A stretch of 64,000 nt of DNA, taken from Paragordius varius. Lineage: Eukaryota > Animalia > Nematomorpha. The translations under genes and the position numbers were made by a program. The notes below the pieces were generated by a model, which searched no databases, was not told where the DNA came from, and saw only the letters and a program-made list of their open reading frames with translations. Where the stretch lies: positions 1,550,001 to 1,614,000 of the forward strand of contig OZ176051.1 of NCBI GenBank assembly GCA_964247055.1. The letters are read 5' to 3'. Each line of letters begins with the position of its first letter. The first letter of the stretch is position 1. Of the stretch, positions 4,008 through 51,181 are shown one piece after another.

Positions 4008-6899
<2,892 letters not shown>

Positions 6900-14100: not shown

Positions 14101-15561
14101 ACAAAAACCCGTGCAATTAAAGAGCCAAATTTTAGCAATGATATAAAAATTAGTGATATTGGCATAACACACAAAGATATAATTAATTCTAACAACAAGA
14201 AAACGGATGTTGTAAATGCATCTGAAAATATAATTTGGAGTTCTCAATCAAATAATCCGCAAAATGGTGGTTGGGGTGATTTGTCCCATAATGTTAATCT
14301 ATCATTTTCGAATCCCTGGGCTTCCAAAAACAAAGGTGCCCTTTTACCTACTTCTACTGTGTCGCTCATACCTCCAAAAAATAACGTCGATTCAGAACCT
14401 CAACCTTTCCACTGTACTCTTAATAAAGAATCGAACTATATTAATAAGAATAACATCTCATCCAAGAGCCATATAGGATGGGGTGAATTGTGCTCAATCC
14501 CAAACACCCTTTCAAATTATCCCAACCCTTGGGCCCCACCCAATAAAAATGGTGATCAGGATGTGTTCAATACTGATGTTGTTCAAACTACAAAATATAA
14601 TATTCCTACTGCCTCAAATGATGACGACAATATTTGGAAAATCTCAAAATTTGAACCACTAATTGAAAACAAGAAATGCGCAAGTATTAGATCCGATTCT
14701 CCTCGGGCGTCGAAAAAGGGAAAAAAGAAAAAGACATCGACATCTTCAGGCCGCCCACCAGTTGTTAAACACTTTAGTGAATCGTCTTTACTGCCTTCAT
14801 ACGCAGGTGTTAAGCGCAAACATCAATCATCTCCTCCTTCTAAGAAAACAACACCGACCAGAAATAGCGGGAGAAAAGTCCGTCCAGAACGTGTTAAGTC
14901 GAAAGCTCCTGTAGGCTTTAGTGAATCCTCATCGCTCCCTTCTTACTCCGGTGTCCAACGTAAATATCAATCTTCTCCCAAAAAAACACCGACCAGAAAT
15001 AGTACAAGAGCTAAGACAGATCTTAACAAGTCTAAAGCTGCCCCTGCCGGATTTAGTGAATCCAGTTTGCTGCCTTCGTACGCAGGTGTTAAGCGCAAAC
15101 ATCATTCTTCGCCCAAAAAAACATCAACCAAAAATAGCACGAGAGCTCACCCAGATTCCCTGAAGTCTAAAGTTTCTGCTGGCTTTAGTGAATCCACTGT
15201 TGACCGCAAACAATTATCGCAGCCCATAAAAAACTTGGCACCGAGGGAAAATATGAAACCAGCGCAATCATTATTTGCTTTGACCAATTCTCAACTCTAT
15301 TATTATTATCAACAACCCGGCCTGTACGATCGAACATCTGAATTTTATGGTCAACAACAAAACATTTATAAATATCAAGCGCCATCACTTTTTCACAATA
15401 GAGAAATGTCATTTTATCAAAACGGTGTAGGGAATGAGAATAGAGCTCCGAATTATTTTTATAATTCCAATGTTCGCACCTTGTATATGAATCCATCACA
15501 ATATACTATTAACAATATGCATCATTATTACAATGGCATGTTTCATAACCAATATTATTGA
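11193..15561 (+). CDS. Large, mostly disordered Lys/Ser/Pro/Asn-rich protein with GWG/NPW repeats, basic SP/TP repeats and a Tyr/Asn/Gln-rich tail
   Basis: The 1222-codon ORF 11893-15561 is preceded by an acceptor (ttag at ~11897-11900). An upstream exon at ~11683-11829 (FKNIVSKCLP...KPSR) and a candidate first exon at ~11193-11355 join it with compatible phases. The exact 5' structure is uncertain. Confidence 0.8.
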
Positions 15562-15820: not shown

Positions 15821-18800
15821 TCAAACTGGATCACCGTTTTGAGCCTGCATACGAACGTAATTGAAATTTGGATTTTGAAATGTCATTGATTTTGGGTGAG
15901 TTGTTAGCCCGTTTGTTCTGAAAAGGGTGGTAAACCTTCCGCTTCGCTTATAAAGTAAGTAAATTATGTAACCGAATATGGCAATGCAAAGCATTATCCC
16001 AAGCACTGATTTAAATTTACTAACCCGAATTATTTTTTGGGCCATGTGCTCGGTCACGTTCCCATAAATTTTTTGAATGATGGAATGGTTCGATATAGCA
16101 GCGTTGGGCGAAATGACATTCGTCACAAGATTGGGATTTAGGGTTGTGGTTAATAAAACGTTATTTTTATTTGTGTCGTTTTTGCAAAAGTCTTCATGTA
16201 ATACATTGAAGAGAGTTTTACCTTTTGCATTTGGCGGTTCAGCACAAGAGGCACTTTCCAAATCTGATCGTTGGAGATCCTTGTCATTTTTACTCAATTC
16301 CTCCAGTTGATTGTTGAGAAGTGATAGAAAGATTTTTAATCCACAATTGCAATTCCATGGATTATCTAATAAAATTATTAAAAAATAATTAGTTTTAGAC
16401 AATTTGTTTTTGCTAAACTATTGCTCGAAAAAATTAAGGTATCTTTTCGAGCTAGCCACATTGTAAGTTAATTGAAACAAACATAGATAAATTAGGTTGA
16501 AAATTAATTTTTCAAGACAGGGATATCGCGCCTTGTAACGATACAACGATATTTATCGCGCGATGTGGCACAATAAAAATTGATATTATTTATATTCAGA
16601 TATGCAAATATTTAAAACTATGAGGACAAATTCGTGCACCAACCTACTACTTTTAATTTAAAACCGTAAATTGATTATTCAAGATTAAAAAATTTTTTAA
16701 GTTATTATTTAACCGTTCTACACCTCGCGAAAATCTACGTGTTACATAACTGGTACCCTATATCTTCTGTAGAAATTCGCAATATATATATAAATATGAT
16801 ATGATGATTTGGGAATTCAAAAAAAACTTGGTTCGACTTCAAAACATATCTGAATTTAGTACTTTTGAGGGATCAATATTTTTGAAAAAAGTAATTATTA
16901 TTGGTTGCAAATATGATGATACTCTTTTAATCATGACAACTGTGGAGATAAGGATCAGAATGATCTAAATCACGGATGTCCATTCGCTACCCGCTAGATA
17001 TTTCAAATGTAAAATTGTTTTCTTTAACAAATTTTTTGATTAAGTTTGCTAAATTTGGCAATCAACTAGCAATTAGTAGTTTTTAAGTTAAATGTTTTAA
17101 TAAAATATATGTTAATTCTCATATATTTGCCAATGTGACACGTCGGCACTTTCGATTCAAAAATGCTACCCGCGAAGCCGTTTTGTTGAACACCCCTGAT
17201 CTAAATAGTCTGAAAATTAATTATTGGAAAAATATATAATCATATTATCACAATTCAATCTAAATAATTTCCAATTATCACACCTATTTTCACATATGAC
17301 TAAATTCTTAAATTTGGTAAATCTTTTACAATAGTTTTGAAACCGATTTACCTTCAAACGAAAAACCCTAAAACGTTTTATAAATTTAGTTCTTAAATTT
17401 GAACGGCTTGGCGCATTACTTTTTATATGGTAAAACATTAAATAATCCTAATTTCTCCAACAGAGGCGTAGCTAGGGGGAGGAAAGGGGGGCTGATGCGC
17501 CGGGCGTCATAGTTGAAAGGGGGCGGATTTAGCAATTTTTGATTTTATTCCAAAAAATAGGTATTTTATTGTTTTAAATAATTGTTATGTTAGATTAGTT
17601 GTTAAATTAGTTCGGATTTGATTAGCCACCAATGTAAAAAGTAATAAAAGTATTAATCGTAAAACTTGAAAGATATTTATTCGTTTTTTATACTCTTTAT
17701 ATAATAATTTTAAGTGAACATAATTTGCATGATATCAAATAAAACAAATAAAATTTCGAGTAACTAATGGATATGTTATTTACATAATACAAAAATATAA
17801 AAATAGACAATCCAAATCTCAATAGAAACTATATCATACATACCAAATATATATTTAAAATTTGCATATGTAACAATAATACATAAAAAATTCACCAATT
17901 TATGAGTTGTCAACGGTTTGAATTAAATAATATTTTAAAAATGCAAGGAATACATGGAGGGGAGGGGGCTCCAGAAATGCAAGCTACGCCTTTACTCTCC
18001 AAATGTTTTTTGATAAACAATAGTCATATGTTTTACGTTAATTACTTATTTTATGTATGGAAATACTAAAAACAAAATTCTAGCGAACACACCAAAATAA
18101 ATGGTTTTATCATAGGATAGAAAAAAGGTCCTATTTAGAGTGAGTCTGAGCGAAAAAAATGGATATTTTAATAACCAAACAAAATGGTAAATGACGGATT
18201 GAATAATGTTTGTGTTAACAATTGTTAAATCCGTGAAATAATTATATTAACAAAAATTTAATTGAAAATCAACTGGAATATGAAAATATGTGAGTACCCC
18301 AAGTCAAATAGTTGTGTAGTACTGATGAGTCACAAGCAGGAAACTAGTCTGATTACTATTGACGAAGGATGTCGCATATATTTATTTTCAATTAAAAAAT
18401 TATATTTTCAGTTTAATTTTCACATTTTTTAGTTAAATCATCTATAGCATTATTTCAATGATTTAACATTTGTTAATAATAAAATTCTGTATATCAAAAA
18501 ACCAAAAAATTTATTTTGGCGAATGTGTTGGAGAATAAATATTCAATCTGTTAATATTATATAATTTTTTGGAAAAATATTGATCAATTGATAATTTTTT
18601 TAAAATAAAATTACAAAATAAACTTTAAAAAATGATTTCTATATAAATTTGTCCCTGCCAAATCTATTCATATAATTTTATAGCTATTAAAAAAGGTTTC
18701 AATCGAAAGGTGCCTAAATATCTTAAGACAATTATATCCGATATACCATTTACACTTCAAGAGTGTCCTTGAACAATTCAAGTTGGTCCTTGAACAATTC

Positions 18801-21273
18801 AAGTTGGTCCTTGAACAATTCAAGTTGGTCCTTGAACAGTTCAAGTTGGTCCTTGAACAATTCAAGTTGGTCCTTGAACAGTTCAAGTTGGTCCTTTAAC
18901 TTTTTTGCTTTGTTTTTAACTTTTATCAATCAAATCGAAAGTAATTCGTCTATTTTATTGTTTTTAACCTATTTTCTATTATTTAACATAAATTTTAAAT
19001 CGATAACAACTTTTAATCTTTGAAAAACCGTATATCTTTATTAATTTCTTAAAATAAATTTGGATATTTATGAGATTTTAACATGAAATGAAAAATTATA
19101 TAAGTTTTCTGGGTGATCAATTAAAATTTTTCATTAAAAACATTTAAAAGTCAATAATTTTGTTCAATTAAAAAAAAATAGTTTTAAACAAAAAAAATGG
19201 TTTTTCAATAAAAAAATTTATTTTTAAATGAATAAATATATAATAAATATAGAAAATTAGGTTAATAAATAATTAAATAAAAAAATAAATGCAAAAATTA
19301 TGGTTAAATCAAAATTTATAAATTTTAAGGACCAACTTGAACTGTTCAAGGACCAACTTGACTTGTTCAAGGACCAACTTGAATTGTTCAAGGACCAACT
19401 TGAATTGTTCAAGGACCAACTTGAATTGTTCAAGGACCAACTTGAATTGTTCAAGGACCAACTTGAATTGTTCAAGGACACTCTTGAAGTGTAAATGGTA
19501 TATAATAAATTAAAATCATGATACAAAAAACAGACCTAGCCCATCAGTTGTTATATAATACAATTTTTTATATATTTTTCACAAATTAAGGTTTATTTCA
19601 TCATGTCATACGTTTAGGATAAAGCAGAAACAAAAAAAATATTAAAAAAAACCTGATAATCCAATAAATTTAATGGCATCGTTTATGTCAACCATTAGAT
19701 CGTGAACTATGAGTATATCCATTTCTTGGAGAAGATTATGTCGCAAATCTAAATGAGTCAATTTTGAAAATTTGGTTAGGAGGTATTTGGGTATCTGTTT
19801 GAGTTTATTGTGAGAAATGTCGAGTGTAACAAGCGAATTCTGTAAGGGCTCAATAACCACTGTGTCAAGTTCTACTATATCATTGTATGCCAGGGAAAGA
19901 TGTTTTAACTTTGTATTGTTAACAAATGAAAGTTTTGAAAAGACAATGTCATTATGAGATAAATCTAAAGCGGTTAAATTCCTGAGACTGTTAGTAAATG
20001 TAGTTGGCATCATTTGTAAATGGTTGTGGCTTAACGTTATATTCGTGAGTGAATTGGCAAAAGAAAAATTCCCAACATCTTCAATGTATTGAATCTCATT
20101 GTGAGACAAATCAAGCGTAATTAATTTATTTAAGTTGGCAAACATATTGCTCTTAATAGCAATTAAATGATTACTTTTCCAAACCATAGTTTCTATATTT
20201 GGAAACTTGGCAAATGCTCCGGCAGGAATTTCATCTAAAGAAACATCCTCTAAATTTATATATTTTAATGATTTAGTTATAGGTATATCATCTTTTTCTT
20301 GCACATCTACGTATGTTATGTTCGTAATGTAAGAACCACGAAAATCAAGTTTTCGAATAGCGGGCAATGCTTTTGAAACTGATAGGGCCGTCATATTTAA
20401 TGTACCGATTTCTAGCGCCAGATACAGATCATCAAGCGATTTAAAATGTGCGATCGCATTCCAAGGTATACCTTGAAACCTTTTTCCCGCCAAATATAGT
20501 TCTGTGATATTTTGGTTTAACCCTTCAAATGAGCCATCATACAAGTTTGTTAGGGCATTCGATCGAAACGAAAGATATTTTAACCGGGGTGCTTTGAGAT
20601 TTTTGAAGATACCCTGAGAAATGTATACGATAGAAGCAATTTCCAGGTTGAGAGAAACTAAATTAGGTAATTCGCCTTCCAATGCCTCCATAATATGGTA
20701 AAACAGATTTTCATTCTTTTTGTTCCGCATACGTTCAACAATGGTAAGCACCTCAAGTGAATCGTACAGCGGTGTAAATGCGAATTGCGACAAATTCGAA
20801 AGATGATTGTCCAGCATTATCAAATGTTTTAGATAGGGTGACCATGGTTCGAAATCGCTCTTCCCCGCCCCCGATTTAGTTAGTTCGGTCCCGAAATCAC
20901 TGAAAACATTGTGCTCCAGCAAAAGCGTAAGACTTAAATTAGAGGCAGAGAAGCCATATTTCTTAACAAATTGGATAAAGGGTTCTAGTACAGCTGAGCT
21001 TTGTAGCAAACTAGAATTAGTATGCACGCAATAAAGGATAAGGAGATTGGTAGTTTGATTTAAATTATTCGCAGTTGATTCGAGTTCTGAATAACGTTGA
21101 GGGGGAAAACGAGTTACAATGTATGGAATATTTGAAGGTTCACTGATGCATTGACAAACGGGAGGCTTTCCGGCAAATTTTGGACAATCTTTTAACAATT
21201 TATATGCGGTGACTGTCGTCAATATCCAAAATTTCAACAAAATAAAGTTAAACATTTTACATTTTATATACAT
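15821..21273 (-). CDS. Type I membrane leucine-rich-repeat protein (signal peptide, LRRs, LRRCT, TM, short tail, no TIR), 2 exons, ~721 aa
   Basis: Exon 19653-21273 has a hydrophobic N-terminus and many LxxLxLxxN repeats. It splices in phase 1 to exon 15821-16365, giving IKFIGLS|DNPWNCNC...CAEPPNAKGKTL...C (LRRCT), then a TM helix (VLGIMLCIAIFGYIIYLLY) followed by KRSGR. Confidence 0.88.
17461..17994. mobile_element. hAT-type MITE with 8-bp TSD
   Basis: TIRs cagaggcgtagct / agctacgccttta. Flanks ttctccaa (17453-17460) and ctctccaa (17995-18002) match at 7/8 positions. Confidence 0.75.
18150..18400 (+). ncRNA. Decayed minimal type I hammerhead ribozyme within a dispersed repeat (possible Penelope-like element pLTR remnant), copy 1
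   Basis: CTGATGA at 18322-18328 and GAAAC-TA-GTC at 18340-18349. Stems I and II are partly broken. Flanks are homologous to 47620-48075. Confidence 0.5.
18744..19500. mobile_element. Foldback-type MITE with TA TSD and 21-bp tandem arrays inside both TIRs
   Basis: TA|TACCATTTACACTTCAAGAGTGTCC ... GGACACTCTTGAAGTGTAAATGGTA|TA. The left arm has 6 and the right arm 7 copies of ttgaacaattcaagttggtcc. Confidence 0.88.
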
Positions 21274-22413
21274 ATATATCTATGTGAATGGTTAATATCG
21301 ACAATTGAATAAGGATCGGTCGTACATTAGGAGACTAGAATGGTGGAAATCTGTGTTTCATAAAGGTAATATATATAATTAAAAATAAAATTTTGATAAA
21401 AATGATATGATTTCTACATGAATTATATATATATAAAATAGATAACCCTGTTTCGCATACACTTGTTTTTTTGTTTGCACACGTATAGTATATATGTTTA
21501 ATGATTTGTATATTTATTTGTTCTATTTTTTAGCGTAGATCACAACGCAAAAAATATTTATTTATCAAAATCAATATTACTTTTTAGGAAAGGAGGGAAG
21601 GGGGGTTAAAGAAAGCGGCATCGCGCAAATAAATAAACCCAATTTCACACAAAAAATATAAATAATAAAAACATTATCATACAATTTAATATATATTGCA
21701 TAATAAATTACAAAGTAATTTTAATTGCACATGTAGGTTTATTAATAGTTATCCATAATGCTATTAGTTAAATTTATAAAATTGCTTAATATAAATGGAC
21801 AAAGGATTGCTTTCATCAACGCTTATTTACTGCTATGATTAGAATTTGAGTCCTCGAAATGAGTTAAAGTTTTTCGAAAAACGTGGGCTATTACATAGTT
21901 TATAATGATTTTTTTTAGTTTTTAGGAATGCGCCGAATGTGAATAAGCCCTTTTTTGAACTAGCCCTTAAGTTTAGCCACATCGTCCAGAAAAGTAGAGT
22001 TTGGATAAATTATTAGCTTTGAATCAATTTTCTGGAAAACGGGGAGACGTATCATTTGATAAATGGATTGTCTTAATAAACGCGAGGGTGTCATAACCAT
22101 TTTGAAATGTCCGCTCAGTTTAGCCTACCCCCTGTATGATTGTAGGTGTTTTGAAAAATATGTGAAGTGATTTTCCAAAAAAAATATGGGCTCCTTCGAG
22201 TTCAAAAATGGAAATTTTTAATATATAATATGTGGTAGGGCCATTGTTTAAATAATTCTTTAGTTCATTTCCATCCCATAAAAATTTTTTTTGAAAAAAA
22301 ATTGAATTAAAATGGTTTTCGGAAACGCAAAGACACACTTAAATACAAAAGAAATTTTTCATTATTGAGTTTTATTTTTTATTCTCAGATATCTATCCAC
22401 CCCCTGGGAATAT

Positions 22414-32955: not shown

Positions 32956-34304
32956 ATATAATGTATTAAGCCGAATTAAAAAATATGCTTTCTCTAGCAT
33001 TATAGGCGCATAGATAAATTTTTTTAAAAAATGTAAATTTGTAAATTAATCCACATTTTTAACATTTTTGCCGCCATTTTTTCTACAAATATATAAGTCG
33101 CTTCTCCAACAGGCAAATAAATGTATATTATGGTTAGAAAATGTTTAATTAACTTTGAGAAGCTTTCAGGCTGCATTTTACCAGAAAAATTTTTATATAT
33201 AACAACAGATGTTCGTTTCCATCGTGTTTTGGAGCTGTCCTTTTAAACTCTAGAAGTCCAAAAATGTAAAAATATAAGATTTTTTATCTAAAACATTGGT
33301 ATGTTTGATAATTAAATTTTAAATAAAAATAACTTTTAAAACTGTGGTATATTTACATTGAGCTCTGGGATATGAAACTACCCCAAAAAGTAAATTAAAA
33401 AAAGTAAAAAGGTTGAATTGACAATAATTAACAGTGCGAAAGAGCAATGTTCTGACCGAAAATATGCAACATATCTTTTAAGTTTATTTTAAAAAACATA
33501 TTTTAATATAATTTTATAAAATTTATTAATCATAAATTTTTTTTGATTTACTTTTACTAACACTTGCAAATAAAATAATTATTTGATAAGCATCAATATA
33601 AGAGGAGTGTTCAACTTGTGGTCCGCAGCCATTAGGCGGCATTTGCCAAATTTGTTTGCGTCCCAAAAATTAACAATAAAATATAAAAGTTCTATTAAAA
33701 AAGAAAATATTGAGCATCCGTACTCTTATTTTTGGATCATTTCTACCAAAAAATTCCAAGAACGGGTTTACAACCCTTTTAAAACAACAACCAGGGTTTT
33801 GAATGATGAAAATTATATTTTTTTATTATTATAGATATACTATATTGATGATTATTTTTACATTTTTCGAACCTGAAATATATATTTGAAAATAATAGGA
33901 ACTATTTTAGTGTTATGTAAATATCTTGTAGCATTTTAAAAGGAGTTTGAGAAAATGGAACATGCTTTTGAAAACCATTGAAATCAGAACCGAAATTATT
34001 TTGTCCAAACCCGTTTTTGTAAAATATTTACAAACGGATTCAGAGTCAAAAAAGGTTACCCAAAACCTAAAAATATGCTTTTCATAAAAAAATTTAAATT
34101 AATTATCAATAAGATATAGATTCGAAAGTTCCACACCAAATTGCGCTAATTGAAATATTAAAATTTTTTTACTAATAATAGCAATTTAAGTTATAACCGT
34201 GTAATTTATAAAAATATTGAGAGTAAAAATAATTAAATTAACAGTCTAGTACTTGAACCCAAATAGCCTAAATTTTTTGGCTTAGAATACATATAATCTT
34301 AGTT

Positions 34305-35414
34305 ATAAAAATGGAAAATTCTGGTTGTGATCTGGCACAGGAAAACCGGTAGACCCATTTCCAAGCTTCGAAAAAATATAATCATTAATGAATGCCCCGA
34401 CAATAGCTTCGCCCTTTTTTTGAAATAGGCCCCCAGTTCGGGCCCAACCCGTAGAGAAACGGGTTTTTTTTGAAAATAGAAGTCCACAAAAATCGTGTCT
34501 TTACAATTTTCTGAAGAACGTGTTGGACCATTCGATTTCAAATATGATTTTTGTTTATTTATTTTTGATCACGCTGAAGAAAAGTCGATTCACTTTTTTG
34601 ATTTAGGCCCTCTTTTTACCCGCTACCCCCGTAAAATGCAATTTTTTCAAAAAACAAAGTCCACAGAAATAATTTTTAAAATCTATTTTTCGCCCTAGGT
34701 ATGAGACCGTAAAAATTAAATATGGATTCCACGTATTCCCTGTTAAAAGGCAAAAATTATAGTTAGGCGTTTCTTTGATAATAGCTGCTGGGTAAGGAGC
34801 TACCAGCTAAAAACTGATTCCACATGTAACTTTGTGATCCGTTTCCGGGAAACCGGTGAACCCAATCAAATCCAAATATCGAAAAAATATAATCATTAAT
34901 GACCGACAATAGCTTCGCCTTTTTTTGGAATTAGGTCCCCAGTTCGGGCCTACCCACGTGTGAAAAATGGGTTGAGTCAATTTTTTGAAGAACGTGTTGG
35001 ACCATTCGATTTCAAATATGATTTTTGTTTACTTATTTTTGATCTCGCTGAACATAGTGGACTCACTTTTTTGATTTAGGCCCTCTTTTTACCTGCTCCC
35101 CCCGTAAAATGCCATTTTTTTCAAAAAACAAAGTCCACAAAAATAATTTTTTAAATCTATTTTTCGCCCTAGGTATGAGACCGTAAAAATTCAATATGGT
35201 TCCACGTATTCCCTGTTAAAAGGCAAAAATTTTAGTCTGGCGTTTCTTTGATGATAGCTGCTGGGTAAGGGGCTACCAGCTAAAAACTGATTCCACATAC
35301 AACTTTGTGATCTGGTACCGGAAAACCAGTTGACCCATTCAAATCCAAACTTCGATACCCCCCCAGAAGTCCGAAAGACTTCCTCGGGCTGCGTAGCAGC
35401 ACGAGATTTACGCT
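34305..35414. repeat. Repeat family A, copy 3, with ~470-510-bp tandem units
   Basis: Unit starts (gatc...aaacc) at ~34330, ~34837 and ~35309. It has the same terminus as copy 2 (cgggctgcgtagcagcacgagatttacgct). Confidence 0.85.
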
Positions 35415-37299: not shown

Positions 37300-40200
37300 A
37301 TGGTTATAAGATATTATTTGATTTGTATTTTAATAAATCCGGCCACTACTGAGTATCTAAAAGATCCTTATGGAAATTTTAAACACGATCCAAGTATGCT
37401 TAAATAATACGCTTTTCCAACAAATTTTAATTTTAAAATTTTTCAAGTTCAACATTTTTTCCTACAAAACAATATTTTTTAAATGAAAAACAACATTTAC
37501 CAACATCTACAATTTTTTTAGTATAAGAGAAATCGAAAGTCTATTAATAGAATAACATGCCCATATTTTAATTATCTTAAGAGACTAATAATATAAGTAG
37601 TAAATTTTTAATTTTTTGCTAATAAACGGTATCTAGCATTCAATTTAATTTGCTAATTATATTCATTTTTTCATGGGCTATCATAGTCAAAACGTCTTTA
37701 ATTACTCTTTGTGTTCTCCAACCTTCATAAAAATAGATGTGATAAAAATAATTTTTACAGTTTCTATCAAGCAATATTCCGGGAAATGTCTTGAGTAACC
37801 CATATCAATTTAAATACTATTATCTATAAATTATTTTTGTATTCGCCGAATATGGTCGAACAATATTCAAGCCCTATTTTTTGGAAAAAAATATCCATTT
37901 AAAATGTCATTTTGAGAGGGTATAAACGGTGCATTTTATTACTCTATACTTAATATTAATATAAATGTGCATAGTGTCTTTGAAGCCAAGCTAAAATTCA
38001 ATTTTGATCATTTTTATATTAATAATACACAGGCAAAAAATGTGATAGTTTTTTAGTTTTTTTGTATTAAGCCTCCTTTTGTAACAATGGTATTAATTTC
38101 AAAAGCTACGAGTTTTATGAAAATCGCTACTTGCCCGAAAACCATGATCATAAGTCGAGCTAAAAATCCATGAACTTTTATAATAGCATGATTCTGAAAG
38201 AGATGCAATTTATCGAATCTTGCTTATTGTCTAAATCAGGGGTGTCCAACATGCGGCCCTCCGAGCTCCGAGACTTTATATGCGGCCCGCAAAAAATTTT
38301 TTAATTTTTTATTTTTCAAAAATACGCTAATAAAATCTAGGCAAAATTAATATTTATTAAACAATTTTTTCTAAATAAATCAATCCGATTGGCAAAAATA
38401 GGAAAAAAATTGTTTTATTGCGTTGGTATTATGCAGTCTAATGTTTAAAATCTAATAAATTTAATGCCGATAAATAATTATGTGGGCCCACGAAACCATT
38501 TGTGTTGGACACCCTTGGTGTAAATGCACACTGTCAAAATCTACACAACATATCTTCAATTAATAACCACTAATATTAATTTATGTGTGAGCATCTCTCA
38601 CCATAATATGATTAGTAGAATTAAATTAAATATTAAGCCAATTTTGATGTTAATATCGTCCACTTAAGCACAGCGACAGGTAATAGGTTAGATCCTCTAG
38701 CTAAAATTATGGGAAGTATTTTGAATTGACAGAAAGTTATATTTTATGTTTTTAAAATATTTGTTTATGTCTAGGGTGTGATTGTGACACCCTTCGATCC
38801 ACAAACAAATGCGATCCTAATGGGCAATGCGAATGTCTTTCTGGCTTTTATGGACATAACTGCACTCATGGTTTGTTAATGCTTTTTTAATATTTATTAA
38901 ACTTTTCTTACGCCTTTAATATTCTATGATAATTATACGTTTAGATTGTGCGTGCTTGAATCCAAACACTAAAATATGTGATCCTTATGACGGAAATTGC
39001 TATTGCACCTATCTCTTTACCAATCCTCTCTGCGCACACCGTAAAATTTAACCATTTTTACTAAATGCACTATATTAGAAAAAAATGCTAAACACTAATT
39101 AAATTATTATCTTATGTTAGGATGCGATTGCGTGGCCGAAAACACTGAATCGTGTTTTATGAAAAAATGCAATTGTAAAGCCGCAAATTTTGGTCCCAGA
39201 TGCGAAAATAGTATTTTAATATCATTTAATCATTTAAACTAAACTGCTCATCTAGTTTGTATTTTACCATTCTTGTTTCTAATTTGCCTCGCCAGCAAAT
39301 TGGCCTATCGTATGTCAATCTAATAAAATCAAAAAATGGCTTTTTAATCATCGGCTAAACCTTGTTATGCTGCCGTAAATTGTAAAAAAATATTTAAAAA
39401 GATTCCGTTTGCTCGCCTATAAAATGATAATTTATTAAACGGGCTGAAAAAAATGTATTCGTTTTTCCATATTTTGTTTTATAAACTAAAAATGTGCTTT
39501 AAAATTACATAGCCTATACACATCATACTTTGGAAGCAATTTTTTGGGCATTTATTGCCATTATAAAGGACTAACTTAGAAAGGTCTCCCAGGTTGCTCA
39601 AAATAGTTGAATTCTCTATAGCCATTAATAAATTCAGATGCACACATACATTCTTTAGTCTATTTAAAAGCGCGTTCGCTTTTCGTCCATTTCCAACACT
39701 AAATATGGCATAAACTAAAAATTGCACATTTTTAAATTTAACGGCCCAATTGAGTCAAATATATACTTTTTTATTTTGTTATCAGTTCATTACCTTTTGG
39801 GGTAGTTTTATATTCCAAAATTTGAAATTTTAATATCTTAAAAAGTATTTAAATTACGAATTTAAAAATATGCTTTCTTTAGTCTTTTAGGCGCATTATA
39901 CAATTTTTTTTAAAAAATGTAAAATTGTAAAATAATCCTCATCTCAAACTTTTTTGGCCGCCATTTTTTACGATAAATTTATTAAATCGCTTCTTCAACA
40001 GGCAAATAAATATATACTATATTATGGTTAAAAAATGAAAATAATTAACTTTAAGAAGCTTAATGCTACATTTTACCTACAAAAACCTGATTTATTTTGA
40101 TTTATATCAGTTGTTCGTTCGAATCGTTTTTTGGAGCTGTGTCAATTTCAAACTCTAAAAGTCACAAAACTGTAAAATATATAAGATTTTTTATCTAATT

Positions 40201-43200
40201 GAGAACGATGTTTGATAATGTAATATTAACTAAAATAATTTTCAAAACTTTGTTATATATGCAAAATTGAGCTCTGAGATATAAAACTAGCCCAAAAGAA
40301 AAACTGTGACAAAAAAGTGAAAGGGTAATGAAGTGTTAATTTTTCGTTACTTTTATTTTAACTTATATGTTTAGAATGCGACTGTAATGCGACAAATTCC
40401 CGCAGTATCTTATGCAGTGAAATTGGGCTTTGTGATTGTAGACTAGGATACTATGGCAGAAAATGTAATCTAGGTATATCTCTATTTATATGAAAAGTAT
40501 TTTAAAACTTAAGAAGCTATAAAAAATTTGGGATGTTTTCGCCTTATTTATAAAATAATACATTTAAAAAATACTTTTGGATGCCATATATGGACCTTAA
40601 TCTGATTTACAGCATATAAGCATATTTTTTGCCCTAAAATGCGATGTAATAGATGTGAAAAAAACAGAGAGTCTAGGATAGCGCTGTCTAACACAAATGG
40701 CCTCGCAGGACCATTTTTACATAAAAAATCCGACGGGCCTCATTCGCAAAATATATGGTCATTTATAGATATCTCATTTAATTTCAATCATAAGACTCCC
40801 AAACCACTGTTTATTTTAACAGTTGTTATGTATTGCCGAAATTCGGAAAGACTTATCCAGAATATATGTTTAACTCTTGCATACAACACATTCATTTCAA
40901 TCCTTCGATTTCAATTGTGGTCGTACCCCAAGCTTAGTTAAATTAAATTCAAAAAATATAGAACATGGCAAAAGTTTGCACTTATATAAACCGAATTATA
41001 AAAAAAATCATTAAAATTGATATTTTAAGGTAAAACTCAAAGGTAGGGATTTAATCAACATGACATGTATGCATTAGCTATATTTAAAAATAATGCAAAA
41101 TAAACCACTTTTTCTGTTTCTCTCAATGTTAGATGTGATTTAAATAAAAAATTAGCTTTAGTTTTAGCTTTTAAATTAAATAAACAGGATATTTTGTAAA
41201 AATGTTGTTAAATAAAAATGGTGTTGAAGTAGTTTAATATGTTTTTTTTTCAAAAGTATATTTTATTTATATATCGGCTTAATATATTTTTTAGGATAGA
41301 AGCATAAGCTAAATTGGGACCGTTTTTAGTAGTTTTAACATCAATTTAAATATTGTCTCGGGTATTAAGATACCTCAATAAATATTTTGCAAGGCTTCGT
41401 GTTGAACACCTCTGGTCTAGGTTCGGGCGTAGGTAAAATTTTCTGACCTTTTGTTTCCTTATCATTTTCCTATTCACAACAAAATATGAAATTCTTGAGT
41501 CGGGAAAAGATACGAATATAATATAACACAGGAGTACAATATTAAAAAGTAAGAATTTTTAAAATTAAAGTATTTTACCTTTAGCATATTAAAATATTAA
41601 AATTATAGAAGGTTAAAGTTTAAACGAAAAAGTTTTCAAAGTAAATTATAATTTTTTCATCCGCTATACTGTATATACCCCTAAAAATACTGCTATATAT
41701 AATTTTATACTAATAAAAAGTTAAATGGTCTTAAGATTAAATTTTTCAAATTTGCTAGAATGTGAATGTGGAGAAACTGCCATATCACCTTTGTGTGATG
41801 CGTCTGGGGACTGTCACTGCAAAGACATGTTGTATGGAAAAACATGCGATAAAGGTATTGATAAAAAAATTTAGTTCATGATAAATATTAGCAAATATTA
41901 TAAAAACAGAGCAACTTTATTATTATTTAACCATATTTATTTAAGTTTACGAGATAAATATGAGAAATGAAAATGTCTAAGGTACACAGCGGGGTACAGC
42001 AATTAAAACTTAATAGTATATCTGCCAACATCATAAATTAACCTGAAATAAATAATGATTTTAACGTCCATATTATATAATGATATTTATATTATAATTA
42101 CATAATTAATATCGGAATATCCCTCATCATACATACATATATATAAATGCTAAGACAAAGCAATGTAACCTGACCAGTTTCAAAAAAAAGACCATCATCC
42201 TATAAACCTATTTAACCAGCAATGCTTTTTATGTTATAAAAGGTTATAACCAAATACCCCTTCAGCCCAAAACAAAAAAACATATAAAAAAAATTAGCGG
42301 TAAATTTCCTTTATAAAATTGGCTTAACTTTCTATATTATACCAAAACGAAAGGTCTTAACACTGAACTTTAAATTTTTTCCTGCTAAATTCTAGTGTGT
42401 TTGTGCAACGAAACTGGTTCACAACACAATACGTGTGGGCAAAATGATGGATATTGTTTTTGCCGAGACGGGTTTACTGGTGTCCACTGTGAGAAAAGTA
42501 AATTTGCTGACATTTTTTAAATTTATGTAATAATAACTATTTTAATTGTAAATTTCAAAAATTACTAGCTTGCAATTGCTCCCAGACAGGATCCTTACAT
42601 TCTTCTTGCGATCAATATGGTTTCTGCAGTTGTTTACCAAACTATTATGGACAATTCTGTCACAAAAGTACCCTTTGATCAAACGAATGAGAATTTTTAA
42701 CTTGTTTTTCCTTAAAGCGTATCTTGTTCTAAACCTATAATTTATGATATCTTTATTTCTATAAGAGTCTAAAGTGATTTGCCATAAGGCTACTTTTATC
42801 AATATATGGGTTAAAATTTACAGTATATATATATCTGATAATATAACTATTTCATTCATTCAAAAAGAATGCCAATGCCAACACAGTATAAATGACGACA
42901 TCTATTGCAACAATGAAGGACAATGTAAATGTAAAAAGACTCATTGGGGCCGTGATTGTGAGAAACGTATATAATAATAATAATATTACCCTATATTGGG
43001 AACATATAGGAACATTAAGAAATCTATTTATAAAAATCAATGGCGAAACTAAGAGTAATTTTCTCTGCCACAAATAAATAATTTGTAATACAACTTTAAC
43101 GTTTGTATATAGCAAGAGACCTTATCAAAAAACGAAGTAAGAGAAACTACCAAATCTAATTTGTTGTTACCCGCTGTTTATTAGTGGATTGTGATTATTT

Positions 43201-45061
43201 ATCATTATTCAAATAAAAATGGCTAAAATGGCTGCACACGAGCGATAATACACTTTTTTAAATACGCGAGTTCGAAATTTTCAAAACATATCGCATTCAC
43301 TGATATATTTAATTTTAAATAGATACACAGTATAAAATTATGCAGACAAAACGTAAAAACTATAGGACAATTATTTAATAAAACAGACAACCATGCTTTT
43401 TAAAGCTTGAATTTACAATTTAAAATATATAACTGAGTATGTACCATTATATTTTGCAACCCAAAACGATGAGTTATATTTTAAATAATAAAGTTGCAAA
43501 TAAATATGGCAGTCTTTTAAATATCTTTCGATTGTTACCTTTTATCTATTTCATTTCTTGTTGTACTCAGGCTGTAGATGTAATGTGACACAATCGTTGA
43601 CTGAATTTTGTGACTACAGAGGACACTGCCAATGTATCGCTGGTTACCATGGAAACAAATGTCAAAGAAGTGAGAATAATAAGGGCTGTTAAATAATTTT
43701 AATAATATAATTTTTGTGTCAGGATGTAAGTATTGTGAGTCCAAACTCAGCGAATGTGATAATAATGGATATTGCAAATGCCCCAAAGGATTTTACGGCC
43801 GTAAATGTAAACAAGGTAATTATATAAATCTATATTTTTATGAAAATGTAAATTGTTGATTTTAAAAGCAATTATCCTAAAAGAATGTACGCCCATTCAA
43901 ATACTATGAAATATAATTTAAAAATGCGACGAGTGTGGCGGACCCTTTAAATTTACTTATTGTTTCCTCCTCTAGTGTGAAAAGGGTTTCCATTTAACAT
44001 AGTACTTATTGTTCATAAAATAAAATCATAAATTCAAAGTTTTTTTAACTATTTACTTAGTTTTTTAAATTCTGAAAATTTTCTGAACTCAAATAACAAA
44101 TTCATTTGACCAAATTTATACATACATAGCGTCATAAATATCGGGTTAACATTTGTACGTTTAGGGACACTCAATTTTTTAGAAGTGTACAATGAGTTTT
44201 TCGCAATTCAAAAATGTTTGGGGGTCAAAAAATATATACGCCGTGCTTTTTTTAATTCACCATAAAGTATGGGAAAAGGTTAAGCAGTTTCTAAAAATAA
44301 GAATGATATTTAGCAAAACACAATTATATACATTAGTTTTAGCATTATTACTTATACTTATTTTAAAGATTCTTTGATAATGATAACAGGCTATAGATTT
44401 AAAGGGTTTAGGAAGCGCCAGATTCTTACACAGTGTGTACCAGACTTTTAGATTTTCCATCATTGTTGTCAACACTTGGCGCGCGAGTGTCAAAGTTTAA
44501 ATAGGTCTTGGTACAATTTTAGCTCAAAAAAAGAGACTCTACAGTGTATATAACATCCTTAAATATTAGTAAAGCCCCAATGCTTTTTGTAAAATATATT
44601 AATACTCCACGTCCTAAATGGTTATAGCCAATATACTCATAATCAGTTGTTTCACATTTGATTTTAGGCATTTATTTCTATCATATGGTGTTCAACCCCG
44701 AAATTTTTTTTGGAATCTGAAAGCCCACATTCTCTATTTAAAAAATGAGGCTACCAAAACATACCGATTTCAAATTATACTCTGTGATATATTCTAGAAA
44801 GGTATGTATGCGGTAAAATATACACGAATGAGTGGTATTCGCATAAATCAGCCAGAATTGTAAATGGTATTACTCCCAACAATCCAATACCATGGTATAC
44901 TTTTGTTACTTCATATATCTTGATACATTTTAATCAGTAAAAATGATATATTATTGATGATTTGGAAATTTTAAAAATGCAAATTAAAATGATATAATTT
45001 TGATGATTCGGAAATTTTAAAAATGCAACATGCTTTTTCTGCGATAATTTGGTTTAAATTT

Positions 45062-45107
<46 letters not shown>

Positions 45108-48100
45108 GATAATTATTTTTGGATTTAATTATAAGAGAAAAAATTGGTAGTTTTTTATTAAATATAGTTAGATTGCATTTACAATAAAGAAAATAGTATT
45201 GACTAATAAAATTAAAAAACGAACAAAAAATCCTACCCTTTGCTGCATATGCCATGTGGCAGTATTTAATGAAAAACTAGCAATGTATACTTATTCATAC
45301 TGGATATTCCTTTCCTGTTACTAGGTTAGTGCGAATATTCATAAACAGTACATGGGTATGCAATGGTGTTATTGTTCACGATTTCTATGTGTTAACTTTG
45401 GGAGATTGCTTTGAGAAAACAGAAATAGACTCTGCCATTACATTAATTTTAGGAGATTACTCGCACGATTTATTGGATTTAAGTGAAAGAACCTACACTG
45501 TGAAAAGTATTAAATTTAGCCCAAGTAATATACCAAATAAAGTCTTATGTGTTTAAACCTTGGCAAAATTTTAGACATTTTAAAAATTTAGATAGGATTA
45601 TTATATTGAAAAAATGACAATACAAGCATCATCAACAATATAATAAAATAACTCAAATAGATTATATCTTGTGACCAATAAAAAAAATTATTTTACATTT
45701 CCCTAGCAGTTATTAGTAATTTCTTAAAATAAAAACGTTTCATATTTTGTGAAAATTATATTTTTTCAAATTTATGCCCAAAAAAGTTGATCTAAATAAT
45801 GTGTCGGTATTATCTTTGAGTCGAAACCCCAACCCTCAAGATCCGAAAATATTTCCCAGTCAATACCAAATCAACTAAAATTTAATTCTTTAAAGAAAAA
45901 ATTATTGCGCCCCCCCCTCACCCCTCTTCCCAAAGAAACAATAAAAATGCAAAATTTATTATAAGCATGTGTGGATTTAGCCTTTTGACGCTATTTAATT
46001 TTTTTATGTTATAATATTTGATAAGAATCAGTTGATAAATAATTAGGACAATATATGTGAATGTATTACAATAACAATGATAACTTCCCAGTACGTTAAC
46101 TCGATGATTGATTATTTTAAATTAAATTATATTAGATAAAAAAACATTCAAATAATAATAAACATTATGTTTAATAATAAATGATCGTTTTTACAAATTC
46201 CCCCTCCCCCATCCCCCTAGATTTTTCTAGGCCACCTATCTGATCGAAAGCTTGCTCAAAAATTCATATTTTGCAAATTCGATACTTCATAACTAAAATA
46301 AGGCGCTTTCAAATATAGATATATTAAATTGATATACAGTATGAGTGACCAAACATATATTATTTATTATATATTGCCAGATAATATAAAAAACAAGAGA
46401 ATTATCATTAAATGAGAAAAAGGGTAACATTAAATTTAAGCCTTTAATATTTTTCCTTGCTATATATGCTATCTGGTAATTAATGAAAAACAGCAATATA
46501 TATTAAAGTGAAATGTGTTAAAAACGATTTTTAATTTAAATTATGCTTATTTTTTTAAAACAGAGATCAATGATAACATAATGCGCCTGGCCATTTTAAA
46601 GTTGAGAAAAACAATTTTGTTCAATTCATTTCTGCAACCCGTGTGCCTGGGAACACCTGAAACATCTGCTTTCTCAAGCAATCGCTTTTTCGCTGATTGG
46701 GGTTACAGAAGTATGTGGCAATTATATTTAAAGCATAAGTAAAATAAATTCTACGCAAATGTATGATATATAGTGCATTTAGTATTATTTAAAATAAAAT
46801 AGAATCACATTTGTTTAATGTCGGGCGACGTGCAAAAATGCCAAGATTGTGTGATAAAAATTTTAATTGATAAATTTTTACATCAAAAAGTTTTTTCAGA
46901 AAAACTTTTAAATCCAAATTTTGTTGAAGCGTACTTCCTACTATTTTGAGGCATGATGATAACGGTATAAAAACCTTATATGATATTATAAAAGCATATT
47001 TTTTAAATGATTCGATGATGCTAAAAATTTATATCTCTCAGAATTTTAATTTTTGTATTTGGGTGATTGTTTGTAAAAAAAATTATAAAATTGGATGACG
47101 AAGGAATAATTTAATCAGAATTCTGAGGTGATATAGATATTCAGCATCATCGGAATATACAGAAGCGAAAAATTTTGGACTTTCGGAGCCTACATCTAAA
47201 AATCAAAATTTGTTAAAAAAATTGTTTGGCTTTTATATCTTTATGATATATTTTAGTGATATTTTTGGAATGAAGCCTTTAGCTTTCAACAAATAAAATT
47301 TATTTTAAAAAATGTGATCAAATTGCCATTTTCATCTGATATGAACCACTAACCACAAAATACATACGAACTTTCTTATAGCTTTCGCAGCGGACAAAAC
47401 CAAAAGCACCATAATAATTCAGATCATTTCCCTAAGAGAATATGTATTTTTTATAGCCCCATATTTTGAATGCATTGTTATAAGTTGAGGTTATTATGAC
47501 TGCAGCTACACATCTGTCTTTACAATATCTGTTTATTTTTTAAAACATTTTGCAGTTTATCTTTTTTCAAGTAACTACTTCTTTTATTTAAACATGTTAC
47601 GCAGTGTTTGGATTTAGTGGGCAAAAATTTTGGGAGAATGTCTAAATCTAATTATAATTTAAATTGTAATGGTAAATGACGATTGATTAAGTTTTGTAAT
47701 AACAGTTGTAAAATCCGTAATATAATGATAATCGAAAATTAAATAGAAAATTATAGAAACAAAAAAAAGAGTGCTTCTTAGTTATTAAATTGATTTCTAT
47801 GAAATCCCCAAGTAGCTATACTCTAAATCGAGGGTAACCTAGTGTTAATTTTCAGTTTATTCAAATTTTCAGTTTAATTTTCATAAATGTCAATTAAATT
47901 TAATTTAAATTCGTATAACCGACTACATCTATACCAAAATTGCAAAGTTGGATATTTATACGGAATCGATATCCCCAAGTCAAATAGTTGTGTCGTACGG
48001 ATGAAGGCTAACAAGCACAAAACTAGTCTACGATTACTATTGACGAAGCTTTCACATATCGTTTATAATTTCTGTTAATAATTATCTTTCTATTAATTTT

Positions 48101-51100
48101 CTATTTAATTTTAGACATTATATTACGGATTTTACAATTGTTATTATAATTTAGTTTTGGGTAGGAACTGCAATCGGATGATTATATTTTTTAAAGCTCC
48201 TTTCTTTTTAAAAAGAATGAATAAAATACAATAAGTTTCAGTTTCAATTTTAATTAATACTAACAAAATTGGTATAAAAACTTTTTCAATCATGGCTGTA
48301 ATAACTAAAATCTGCAAAAATATTTTATCACAATAAAAAATTTACTTAAAGTCATATATAATAATTATATATTTAATTATTTACATTTATATGTTACTAA
48401 TTTAAGACATGTACGCGCAATCCTCAACAGTGAAAACAGGTATATTCCAATCCATAGACACTGTTGAATGCCAAAAATATCTAGAATTCGGGGTAGAACT
48501 TCCCCCATTTTGGATGTGTGCCATTCCTCATACAAACGAATTCTCTTGCCTTGGTAAACTTGGTACGCCTCTCACGTATGTGGAAGAAAGTAAATCTAAA
48601 TCATTAAACTATTTTATTAAAACACTAGCAATGTGCTGGGGGGGTTATTTGAAAAAAGGGACAGTAAAATGATCCACATATGTGGATTATTTCGAAAAAT
48701 TATTTAATAGCTATGATCTCATAGGAATTATAATACGGTGCATTCATACATTGATTGTTTACTTGAGGGAAAAATAGATTTAAAAAAATATTTATACGTA
48801 TGATAGAAACTCCTTACTCAGCAGCTATCATTAAAGAAACGCTTGACTAAAATTTTTGCCTTTTAACAGGCAATACGAAAAAACCTTCTCAAATTTTTTG
48901 AGTCTCATACCTTGGGCAAAAAAATACAATCAAAAAATTATTTTTGTGGACTTTGTTTTTTTTTGAAAAAAATGGCATTTTACAGGGGTAGCGGGTAAAA
49001 AGAGGGCCTAAATCATTAAAGTGAGTAGACTATGTTCAGCGTGATCAAAAATAAGTAAACAAAAATCATATTTGAAATTGAATGGTCCAACACGTTCTCC
49101 AAAAAATTGACTTAACCCATTTTTCACACGGGGTGGGCCCGAACTGGGGACCTAATTCCAAAAAAGGGCGAAGCTATTGTCGGGGCATTCATCAATGATT
49201 ATATTTTTTCGTTGTTTGGATTTGAATGGGTCTACAGGTTTTCCGGAAACAGATCACAAAGTTACATGAGAAATCAGTTTTTCGCGGGTAGCTCCTTACC
49301 CAGCAACTATCATCAAAAAAACTCTTGGCGAAAATGTTTGCCTTTTAACAGAAAATACGTGGAATCCATATTGAATCTTTACGGCCTCATACCTTGGTCG
49401 AAAAATAGACTTAAAAAAATATTTTTGTGGACTTTGTTTTTTGAAAAAGGTGGCATTTTACGGGGGGAGCGGGTAAAAAGAGGGCCTAAATCAAAAAAGT
49501 GACTCCATTATGTTTGGCGCAATCGAAAATAACTAAATAAAAATCATATTTGAAACTGAATGAACCAACACGTTCTCCGGAAAATTGTCTCAAAGACACG
49601 ATTTTTGTGGTTTTCAAAAAAAACCCGTTTTTCACACGGGGTGGGCCCGAACTGGGGGCCTATTTGAAAAAAAGGGCGAAGCTATTGTCGGGGCATTCAT
49701 TAATGATTATATTTTTTCGATGTTTGGATTTGAATGGGTCTACCGTTTTTCCTGTACCAGATAACAAAGCCAGCATTTTCCATTTTTATAAATATATATT
49801 CAAATTTACATAGAGTGAAGACTATTTCACATTGATTAAATATAGGTTCAAACTCCACATAAGAGTAATAAATGCCAAAAACCGCCAAACAGTTGATTAT
49901 AAAATGTTTAACTTATTAAATATCGCAAAAACTACGGTTGAACTTATAATTTTATATATGCTAAAATTGTTCACAACACTGGACAACAAATATTTCTCCA
50001 ACTCGAGTTGATGGCTTTTTCTGATAATTATTTTCATTTTGACAGTAAATCTGAAAATAAAATAATTCTACCTATACAATTTGTTTCTTATGGTTATGCG
50101 CCCTCTTAAAATCTTACAAGAATATTTTTTCATTGAAAATTTATAACAAATGCCCATTTGTAATATATTACTCAGATCTGTAATGAAAATTCCATAAAAT
50201 GCATAATAATGTTTTACATCGTTAGATAATATTGGAGATAGAAAGCTACAAAATTTGAAAGTTAGAGCGCTTTTCTCAATTAATATATTTTTAAAACTAA
50301 TTGATTCATAATAGATCAAACTTTGTGTAGATGGCGATGAATGTTAAAAAAAATAACACAAGAAAGTTTTTGTAATTAAACCACTTATTTATTGCTTTTG
50401 TCATTCAAAACCTCCATTTTATTTTTCGTTTTTTAAAAAATTACCATTTCATCAATATTAATTTATTTCTTTAGGAAGTTTATAATTGTAAAACTTCAAC
50501 GACTAGAAATAAAATTTATGGTTTTTTTTAATTTTTTATATCACCATTTACAAATGATTTTTGTTTAAATAACAAACTAAAAGTTTATTGAGAATTTTTT
50601 TTAAATTTTATAAATATAACACTAATTATTAAATTAAAATAAATTCTATGATTTTAAATTAGTTGGTCTTTAGAAAATATTGACTTATTTATGTGTTGAA
50701 TATTTTGACCTTATAAATCTAAATAACTTTACATCATTGATTTATATGACTAACTAAAATAAAATATATGTAAATCTATATATATAAACTATATCCATTT
50801 TGTGTATTAAACAAGTATGCAGGGACTAAATTTGATACTAGCTTAACATATTTTGGTTTTTTGCATTCTCTTATAAGTTTTTTTTTCAGATTCTCATCAT
50901 AACCCTCAAAACGGGCCAGAGGACCCCAAAATTTCATACATTATTTATATTTTTAATAAGTCCATTTTAAAATTATAGATACGCATTATTTAATGGGACT
51001 ATTTGTTGAGGGAACACAAGATTGCTTGAGGCCAAAACCTTCATTCTTTCTTAACGTCTCAAACTTTAATCATTGGATTCAATTAGAAATTCGTTCATAT

Positions 51101-51181
51101 GATACTGAAGAGGAAACTTACAATTATACCGGAATGCATGGTCCCATCATAGAACCGCAAGGGGATCTCATATTTAATTAA
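37300..51181 (+). CDS. Secreted protein: signal peptide + nine 6-Cys EGF/laminin-EGF-like modules + non-catalytic trypsin-like domain, 16 exons, ~611 aa
   Basis: Exons: 37300-37393 (MVIRYYLICILINPATT...), 38638-38679, EGF exons 38775-38870, 38945-39040, 39121-39210, 40375-40473, 41759-41854, 42396-42497, 42868-42966, 43571-43669, 43723-43815, and protease exons 44798-44894, 45325-45524, 46564-46710, 48407-48589, 50979-51181. They total 1836 nt in frame with GT-AG junctions. Trypsin landmarks: CG...R|IVNG...PWLVRI...CNG...VLTLGDC, LAILKL...QPVCL...WG, C...MCA...SCLGKLGTPL, LMGL...C...NVSNFNHWI. The first two exons are less certain. Confidence 0.82.
38237..38517. mobile_element. hAT (Buster/Charlie-like) MITE with 8-bp TSD; related copies at ~57809-58083 and ~58887-59128, isolated ends at ~17185-17198 and ~41400-41414
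   Basis: TIRs caggggtgtccaac / gttggacacccttg. Flanks gtctaaat and gtgtaaat match at 7/8 positions and have a central TA. Confidence 0.8.
39790..40305. mobile_element. MITE family C (related pieces at ~32975-33400, ~29640-29810, ~56030-56260)
   Basis: Imperfect TIRs ttttggggtagttttatat / atataaaactagcccaaaa. The internal block cgcttcttcaacaggcaaataaat is shared with ~33098. Confidence 0.6.
40874..41385. mobile_element. TTAA MITE family B copy (right end disrupted)
   Basis: ttaa|ctcttgcatacaacacattc, with the same internal blocks as 29828-30451 and 52363-52875. Confidence 0.65.
47620..48075 (+). ncRNA. Decayed hammerhead-containing repeat, copy 2
   Basis: gtcgta-CGGATGA-aggc-taacaa-gcac-AAAAC-TA-GTC-tacgat at 47992-48034. 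Stem I is intact (TCGTA/TACGA) but the core has two substitutions. Confidence 0.45.
48630..49797. repeat. Repeat family A, copy 4, inverted, inside an intron of the EGF/protease-homolog gene
   Basis: Reverse complement of copy 3 blocks. gggtgggcccgaactggg occurs twice about 500 bp apart (~49132, ~49640). Confidence 0.85.

Follow-up and report, generated by a model that had tools for sequence, protein, structure and literature searches.

A gene model joining a ten-module EGF stalk to a catalytically dead trypsin-fold domain in the horsehair worm Paragordius varius

Gene structure

We examined a 64,000-nucleotide (nt) stretch of the genome assembly of the horsehair worm Paragordius varius (GCA_964247055.1, contig OZ176051.1, positions 1,550,001 to 1,614,000). 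This whole stretch is called the window here, and coordinates count from its first letter. Its composition is that of AT-rich animal DNA, with 25-36% GC in 2-kb bins. A gene of 16 exons occupies positions 37300-51181 on the + strand (Table 1). Its predicted product of ~619 amino acids (aa) would begin with a short signal-like segment, continue with ten six-cysteine EGF modules and a 20-residue linker that includes a tethering Cys, and end in a chymotrypsin-fold domain. All three residues of the catalytic triad are replaced in that domain. The locus holds a genuine gene that is intact and unusual.

All 15 introns have GT-AG ends, the splice phases are consistent over the 16 exons, and the frame is open for 619 codons, which with the stop gives a revised coding length of 1860 nt. 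This agrees with the intact frame across 16 exons that an earlier note on this DNA had described. The size proposed there, ~611 aa, is corrected to 619 aa by our model. GC content is 38% in the exons compared with 26% in the introns, which range from 53 nt to 2.4 kb. Within the intron sequence a stop occurs every ~13 codons, and the chance that a random frame would remain open over 619 codons is P ~1e-21. An AATAAA motif lies downstream of the stop codon, at 51203. The gene model contains no transmembrane-like coding exon; it ends with the protease domain, with the stop at 51181.

In the interval that separates the upstream gene from EGF module 1, the best-scoring combination of an ATG, a hydrophobic stretch and a phase-1 donor was taken as the first exon, which is plausible as a signal-peptide-like start. 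Some choices were available at the boundaries of the five exons that encode the protease domain (P1 to P5): an alternative donor for P1 at 44936, an alternative acceptor for P2 at 45349 and an alternative acceptor for P4 at 48431. The junction 44936/45349, which would give a model of 1878 nt, was rejected because the profile alignment of the P2 segment begins upstream of the acceptor at 45349. The junction that we retained (44894/45325) has the better pyrimidine tract, and its split TG/G codon restores the canonical Pro-Trp. It places 25 residues between Ile16 and Cys42 (chymotrypsin numbering), compared with the canonical 27.

Table 1. Exons of the EGF-protease gene model, with positions in the window.
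Feature	Positions	Strand	Characteristics
Putative exon 1	37300..37393	+	ATG, MVIR + YYLICILI + NPA, phase-1 donor gtatgc
EGF module 1	38775..38870	+	phase 1-1; Pfam EGF_laminin 21.6 bits, profile 1-32 of 49
EGF module 2	38945..39040	+	phase 1-1, degenerate; six Cys in register, no Pfam match
EGF module 3	39121..39210	+	phase 1-1, degenerate, short loop; six Cys in register, no EGF Pfam match
EGF module 4	40375..40473	+	phase 1-1; Pfam EGF_laminin 25.5 bits
EGF module 5	41759..41854	+	phase 1-1; EGF_laminin 20.7 bits, just below cut-off 21
EGF module 6	42396..42497	+	phase 1-1; Pfam EGF_laminin 29.4 bits
EGF module 7	42569..42667	+	phase 1-1; Pfam EGF_laminin 27.9 bits
EGF module 8	42868..42966	+	phase 1-1; Pfam EGF_laminin 19.3 bits
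EGF module 9	43571..43669	+	phase 1-1; Pfam EGF_laminin 24.4 bits
EGF module 10	43723..43815	+	phase 1-1; first loop C-x2-C not C-x-C; EGF_laminin 17, EGF_2 16.8 bits
Protease exon P1	44798..44894	+	linker, tethering Cys (VCGK), KSAR-IVNG, to Pro-Trp; Trp codon split TG/G
Protease exon P2	45325..45524	+	Cys42, TLGDC (His57 to Asp), Cys58
Protease exon P3	46564..46710	+	M-R-LAILKL (Asp102 to Arg), PVCL (Cys122), ADWG
Protease exon P4	48440..48589	+	Cys168, Cys182, Cys191, G-K-L-G-T-P (Asp194 to Lys, Ser195 to Leu), residue 189 Phe
Protease exon P5	50979..51181	+	GLFVEG-TQDC (Cys220), NVSNFNHWI, 30-aa acidic tail, stop codon

Dispersed repeats with a high copy number in the reads lie within the introns and do not reach into any exon. 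In the P4-P5 intron, a dispersed repeat of ~480 bp is present at 48810-49800 as two tandem units with open reading frames (ORFs) of 90-128 aa. This repeat recurs at least three more times in the window with 70-87% identity, at 34300-35350 (inverted), 2434-2914 and 9418-9674. The intronic stretches at 46740-48118 and 48513-48700 belong to a high-copy repeat family, because in three DNA runs their summed contig depth is very high and they show many variants. Many contigs join these stretches in opposite orientation, suggesting inverted-repeat elements. The P1-P2 intron contains a simple TA-rich repeat (45055-45113) whose minus strand reads YIYIYIYI.

A stalk of ten EGF modules

The earlier count of EGF modules, nine, was one short. 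There are ten EGF-type exons, and module 10, with its atypical first loop, may be the one that was missed. Five of the ten exons pass the Pfam EGF_laminin cut-off. Across the modules, 59 of 60 Cys are in register, together with two Gly; at the remaining columns identity between modules is only 18.5%. Retention of Cys amid such divergence indicates a long-standing structural constraint, and on this pattern the modules are old duplicates held to one predicted disulfide scaffold.

The PF00053 matches do not extend past position 33 of the 49 in the profile, and there are six Cys per module. Laminin-type EGF (LE) domains are defined by eight Cys and a fourth disulfide loop, which are found in none of the stalk modules. 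When a profile of the ten modules was compared with solved structures, the best match was the SCARF1/SREC-I ectodomain (8hna, E 4e-18, with 4-6 tandem repeats aligned), followed by the LE domains of laminin beta-2. Because SCARF1 is the best solved match and the fourth LE loop is missing, the stalk is classified by its sequence pattern as a six-Cys (truncated laminin-EGF) array of the SREC/MEGF/Draper type. The EGF arrays of SREC/MEGF/Draper receptors themselves bind many ligands.

An N-x-S/T sequon occurs at the same place, right after C-x-C, in four of the ten modules (40377-40385, 42398-42406, 42571-42579 and 43573-43581). It is possibly a conserved N-glycosylation site on the stalk.

A trypsin-fold domain without a catalytic triad

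The C-terminal domain was aligned in chymotrypsin numbering one exon at a time. P2 alone matches Pfam Trypsin (PF00089) with 23.2 bits, compared with a cut-off of 20.6. Against the PDB, it aligns with residues 25-75 of heparin-binding protein, its best solved match, and of complement factor D, with Asp in the His57 column. P3 aligns with thrombin residues 99-128 (DIALMKL...PVCL; E 0.001) and has Arg in the Asp102 column, and P5 aligns with the C-terminal residues 199-232 of a serine protease from snake venom (E 0.037). P1 and P4 had no Pfam or PDB match when searched alone. P4 was placed only by a local trypsin profile, in which CqGdsGgP reads CLGKLGTP.

This local profile was built from six canonical domains found in the protein search with P2 (described below), and each exon was scored against it separately. 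The exons cover it in collinear fashion (P2 at 25-77, P3 at 91-130, P4 at 150-191 and P5 at 210-228). Among 242 stop-free + strand segments between 43816 and 51400, those of P2 to P5 alone had E values better than 0.1 on the trypsin profile, and they did so in order; there the P2 and P3 segments covered profile positions 11-78 and 90-131. Because only these segments match, and collinearly, the trypsin-fold assignment and the three triad substitutions are sound at the level of alignment.

Loss of the whole triad, as proposed in the earlier note, was confirmed. His57 is replaced by Asp (TLGDC, 45404-45406) both in the translation and in the exon-wise alignment, Asp102 by Arg (M-R-LAILKL, 46584-46586) and Ser195 by Leu (GKLGTP, 48559-48561). 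An active peptidase of this family has His57, Asp102 and Ser195, in place of which the alignment shows Asp, Arg and Leu here. With Phe at position 189, the domain also lacks an S1 pocket like that of trypsin. By these residues the domain is an S1A family homologue and not an enzyme, and is predicted to be catalytically dead.

Much of the scaffold is retained. All eight Cys of the S1A disulfides are at aligned positions, with presumed pairing 42-58, 168-182, 191-220 and 122-linker. These include the linker Cys (VCGK), the PVCL Cys and the three intradomain pairs that the earlier reading had listed as kept. A 136-201 pair is not present. Between Pro198 and Gly216 the residue spacing matches the canonical one exactly, which speaks for a retained fold.

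The zymogen junction

In S1A zymogens, cleavage creates a new amino group on Ile16 that binds Asp194, and the autolysis loop lies in the segment that becomes ordered at that point. The domain described here had been said to keep its activation site. This is true of the motif itself, since R-IVNG is present in the translation at 44854-44868, but not of its partner residue, as Asp194 is replaced by Lys (C-L-G-K-L-G-T-P). In addition, ADWGYR and the strand before Cys168 are separated by ~4-7 residues, compared with ~19 profile positions, and the autolysis loop (GWG to Cys168) is ~12-15 residues short. We looked for a missed exon in the P3-P4 intron and found none. With Lys at position 194 and a shortened autolysis loop, the domain is predicted to have no working Ile16-Asp194 switch of the classical kind; on this alignment, activation cannot take place in that way even if R-IVNG is cut.

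These observations bear on the proposal that the protein is a cleavage-activated ligand like HGF/MSP or the clip-domain serine protease homologues (SPHs) of arthropods, in which a cut at R-IVNG would switch the domain to a binding-competent form. Retention of R-IVNG, of the tethering Cys in the linker and of Cys122 is what such a ligand would be expected to display. However, with Lys at position 194 the salt bridge that drives the switch cannot form, and the shortened loop is itself part of the activation domain. HGF, haptoglobin and clip-domain SPHs all retain Asp194. We consider this explanation unlikely, and "cleavage-activated" is unsupported as it was stated. Cleavage at R-IVNG, if it occurs, may instead give a disulfide-linked two-chain protein, not an activated one.

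Searches for relatives

P2, the longest protease exon, was the sole query in a search of 1.84 billion representative proteins, a library that includes annotated animal proteomes. There were 18 matches at E<=1e-3, of which 17 were checked. Eleven matches are polyserases, whose scores are summed over many trypsin domains. P0001, P0003 and P0016 are artefacts of repeats or composition, P0004 is an RTX-repeat protein and P0018 has no Pfam family. Three uncharacterised proteins of butterflies or moths (P0006, P0011 and P0012) have an N-terminal trypsin-like domain without His57 (TSAAC). They share with the gene a WVCxGVIVHxxYxLT strand, with 46-48% identity over 25-40 residues, a likeness that is probably due to convergence or to general S1A similarity.

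No EGF domain was detected in the 14 P2 matches that were scanned with Pfam. The query covers a protease exon and does not show that the order of EGF modules followed by a trypsin fold is absent elsewhere. That no close match appeared, though the library holds annotated animal proteomes, suggests that the protease domain is strongly diverged and lineage-restricted. A word search with P2 gave no candidate; its length filter left out full-length relatives. We found nothing relevant in the literature on this architecture or on horsehair-worm proteases. The domain combination had not been recognized as that of a named family, and the P2 search, which gave no close relative, is in line with this. 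To our knowledge, no named family combines multiple EGF modules with a dead trypsin domain.

Three sequencing runs labelled with three other organisms (X3, X6 and X7) contain the same species, because their single-copy pieces, short contigs present at low depth, are identical to the window in the single-copy parts of 42800-48400. As the runs are from the same species and the remainder of their matching sequence is high-copy intronic repeat, they were rejected as a source of divergence or of a ratio of nonsynonymous to synonymous substitutions (dN/dS). The occurrence of same-species DNA under other names fits either parasite material in host samples or mislabelled runs.

Integrity of the gene

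The junction between the two halves of the gene deserves particular attention. P1 starts in phase 1 and has no Met, and there is a stop codon three codons upstream of its acceptor. For these reasons P1 must be preceded by another exon. The phase-1 donor of EGF module 10, which lies 982 nt upstream, fits the phase-1 acceptor of P1 (ctag).

A second candidate for the upstream exon was noted at 44618-44687, where an ATG and a hydrophobic stretch of 23 residues are followed by a phase-1 GT, 110 nt upstream of P1. It is possible that this is an alternative first exon for a protease-only product, for which the case is weak, or a chance ORF in AT-rich DNA.

Taken further, the same observation could mean that there are two adjacent genes, one for an EGF array with module 10 as its last module and the other for a secreted trypsin-fold pseudoprotease that starts from a first exon of its own. 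The hydrophobic stretch that starts at the ATG at 44618 could be spliced from the phase-1 GT at 44687 to the P1 acceptor, while read-through of the module 10 donor meets a stop after 13 codons, making an EGF-only product possible. No transcript joins the EGF and protease halves. On the other hand, gtgttc at 44687 is a weak donor, DNA of 27% GC often contains hydrophobic ORFs by chance, and a phase-1 match such as that between module 10 and P1 is expected from exon shuffling into a modular protease. We judge two genes to be quite unlikely, somewhat more so than a cleavage-activated ligand.

We also considered whether this could be a pseudogene, a silent or decaying copy of an EGF-protease gene whose frame is still open by chance. 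The domain has lost the triad, Asp194 and part of the autolysis loop, EGF modules 2 and 3 are degenerate, no RNA was found and the introns are full of dispersed repeats. Yet 619 codons are open in a region where intron sequence has a stop every ~13 codons, GT-AG is kept at all 15 introns, and the structural Cys are retained both in the ten diverged modules and in the protease domain, as is the exact Pro198-Gly216 spacing. A domain that loses its triad but retains its scaffold bears the mark of a pseudoenzyme and not of decay. A pseudogene is thus improbable, and we give it slightly less weight than two adjacent genes.

We favour, with a probability of roughly 70%, a single 16-exon gene in which a SREC/MEGF-type stalk of ten EGF modules carries a dead chymotrypsin-fold head, and whose product is probably a secreted, non-enzymatic extracellular binding or adhesion protein. 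The splice phases, the Cys conservation and the open frame are our grounds for inferring one gene under purifying selection. Several observations weigh against this interpretation. Runs labelled as RNA under the species name contained almost none of the sequence words of the gene, and the largest of them gave nothing on 42800-48700. The possible protease-only first exon competes with module 10 as the partner of P1. The putative signal peptide is short, the P1/P2 and P3/P4 junctions each have one alternative, and there was no orthologue among the P2 matches at E<=1e-3.

Other features of the window

Two long uninterrupted ORFs, at 11881-15558 on the + strand (1226 aa) and at 19645-21279 on the - strand (545 aa), are present in a genome where most genes are split by introns. 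Between them, at 18727-19535, lies a tandem repeat with NNSSWSL-type heptads in open frames on both strands. An exon-like ORF on the - strand (5254-5523) contains a JAMM/MPN metalloprotease motif and is probably from a gene for a proteasome-lid or signalosome deubiquitinase.

Proposed role and comparison with known proteins

If the single-gene interpretation is correct, the EGF array would form a rod that could bind ligands as well, and the dead protease domain would serve as a globular recognition head. The protein is probably secreted, and its N-x-S/T sequons and Cys-rich modules are compatible with the secretory pathway. The earlier suggestion of an extracellular ligand or adhesive scaffold with a long EGF stalk is consistent with the combination of multiple EGF modules and a dead trypsin fold and with its likeness to S1 domains that bind; the part of that suggestion that invoked activation by cleavage is not.

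Dead trypsin-fold domains are a recurrent animal route to extracellular ligands, cofactors and adhesion proteins. In this gene three features come together that we did not find combined in a named family: a ten-module SREC/MEGF stalk, replacement of the whole triad, and replacement of Asp194 with the Arg-Ile junction kept. There are almost no functional molecular data for the horsehair-worm phylum. If it is true that the gene belongs to a multi-gene family of this parasitic worm, it would be a candidate for a role where parasite and host meet, or in matrix biology specific to the lineage.

A much more speculative extension, suggested by analogy and in our opinion improbable, is that a family of secreted EGF-stalk pseudoproteases has expanded in the horsehair worm and is released into the insect haemocoel as decoys that jam melanisation and encapsulation. 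They would act by binding host clip proteases, SPH cofactors or prophenoloxidase, with the SREC-type EGF array providing an additional, scavenger-like surface for binding. The analogy is with Vn50, a dead-protease venom protein of a parasitoid wasp that interferes with melanisation and encapsulation in the host.

Among known proteins, arthropod SPHs (clip-domain SPHs/CLIPA and masquerade) and Vn50 are secreted and likewise combine Cys-rich N-terminal modules with a non-catalytic S1A domain, and share with this gene a zymogen-type Arg-Ile junction and an interchain disulfide. SPHs are known to act in adhesion, in opsonisation and in control of the melanisation cascade. However, clip-domain SPHs have one or more clip domains, whereas no exon here has a Pfam clip match and an EGF array is found instead. 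In known SPHs the change is usually limited to Ser195 (to Gly) and Asp194 is retained, whereas this gene has replacements of the entire triad and of Asp194. S1A homologues without catalytic activity abound in invertebrates; one study counts 125 of 269 in Tenebrio (PMC11172050).

Protein Z (Gla-EGF-EGF-dead protease) also has EGF modules followed by an inactive trypsin fold, which is used as a cofactor. Its N-terminal part consists of a Gla domain and two classical EGF modules, whereas this gene has no Gla match and ten six-Cys modules of the SREC type, and no specific sequence relationship with protein Z was detectable in the P2 protein search. HGF/MSP and apolipoprotein(a) resemble the gene in having repeated Cys-rich modules that carry a dead protease domain, and cleavage of HGF/MSP at the zymogen site yields two chains linked by a disulfide. 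The repeats of all these proteins are kringles and not EGF modules, and HGF keeps Asp194 and needs the cleavage switch, in contrast to the Lys found here.

The tandem pattern of the stalk (C-x-C ... C ... G-x-C-x-C-x2-G-x2-G-x2-C) is the same as that of SCARF1/SREC-I and MEGF10/Draper/CED-1. They are type I membrane receptors that have a transmembrane helix, a cytoplasmic tail and EMI or other head domains but no protease domain, which is not the build of the product predicted here. Heparin-binding protein (azurocidin/CAP37) likewise uses a dead S1A domain for binding, but is a single-domain granule protein with two triad residues replaced and no EGF stalk. The likeness to dead-protease binding proteins is one of proposed function, and the features that define each of them (the clip domain, the Gla domain, the kringles or the single-domain build) are lacking in this gene. 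Taken by itself it is a well-supported gene annotation, an unusual variant of the common theme in which a dead protease serves as a binding protein, and represents neither a new system nor a new mechanism.

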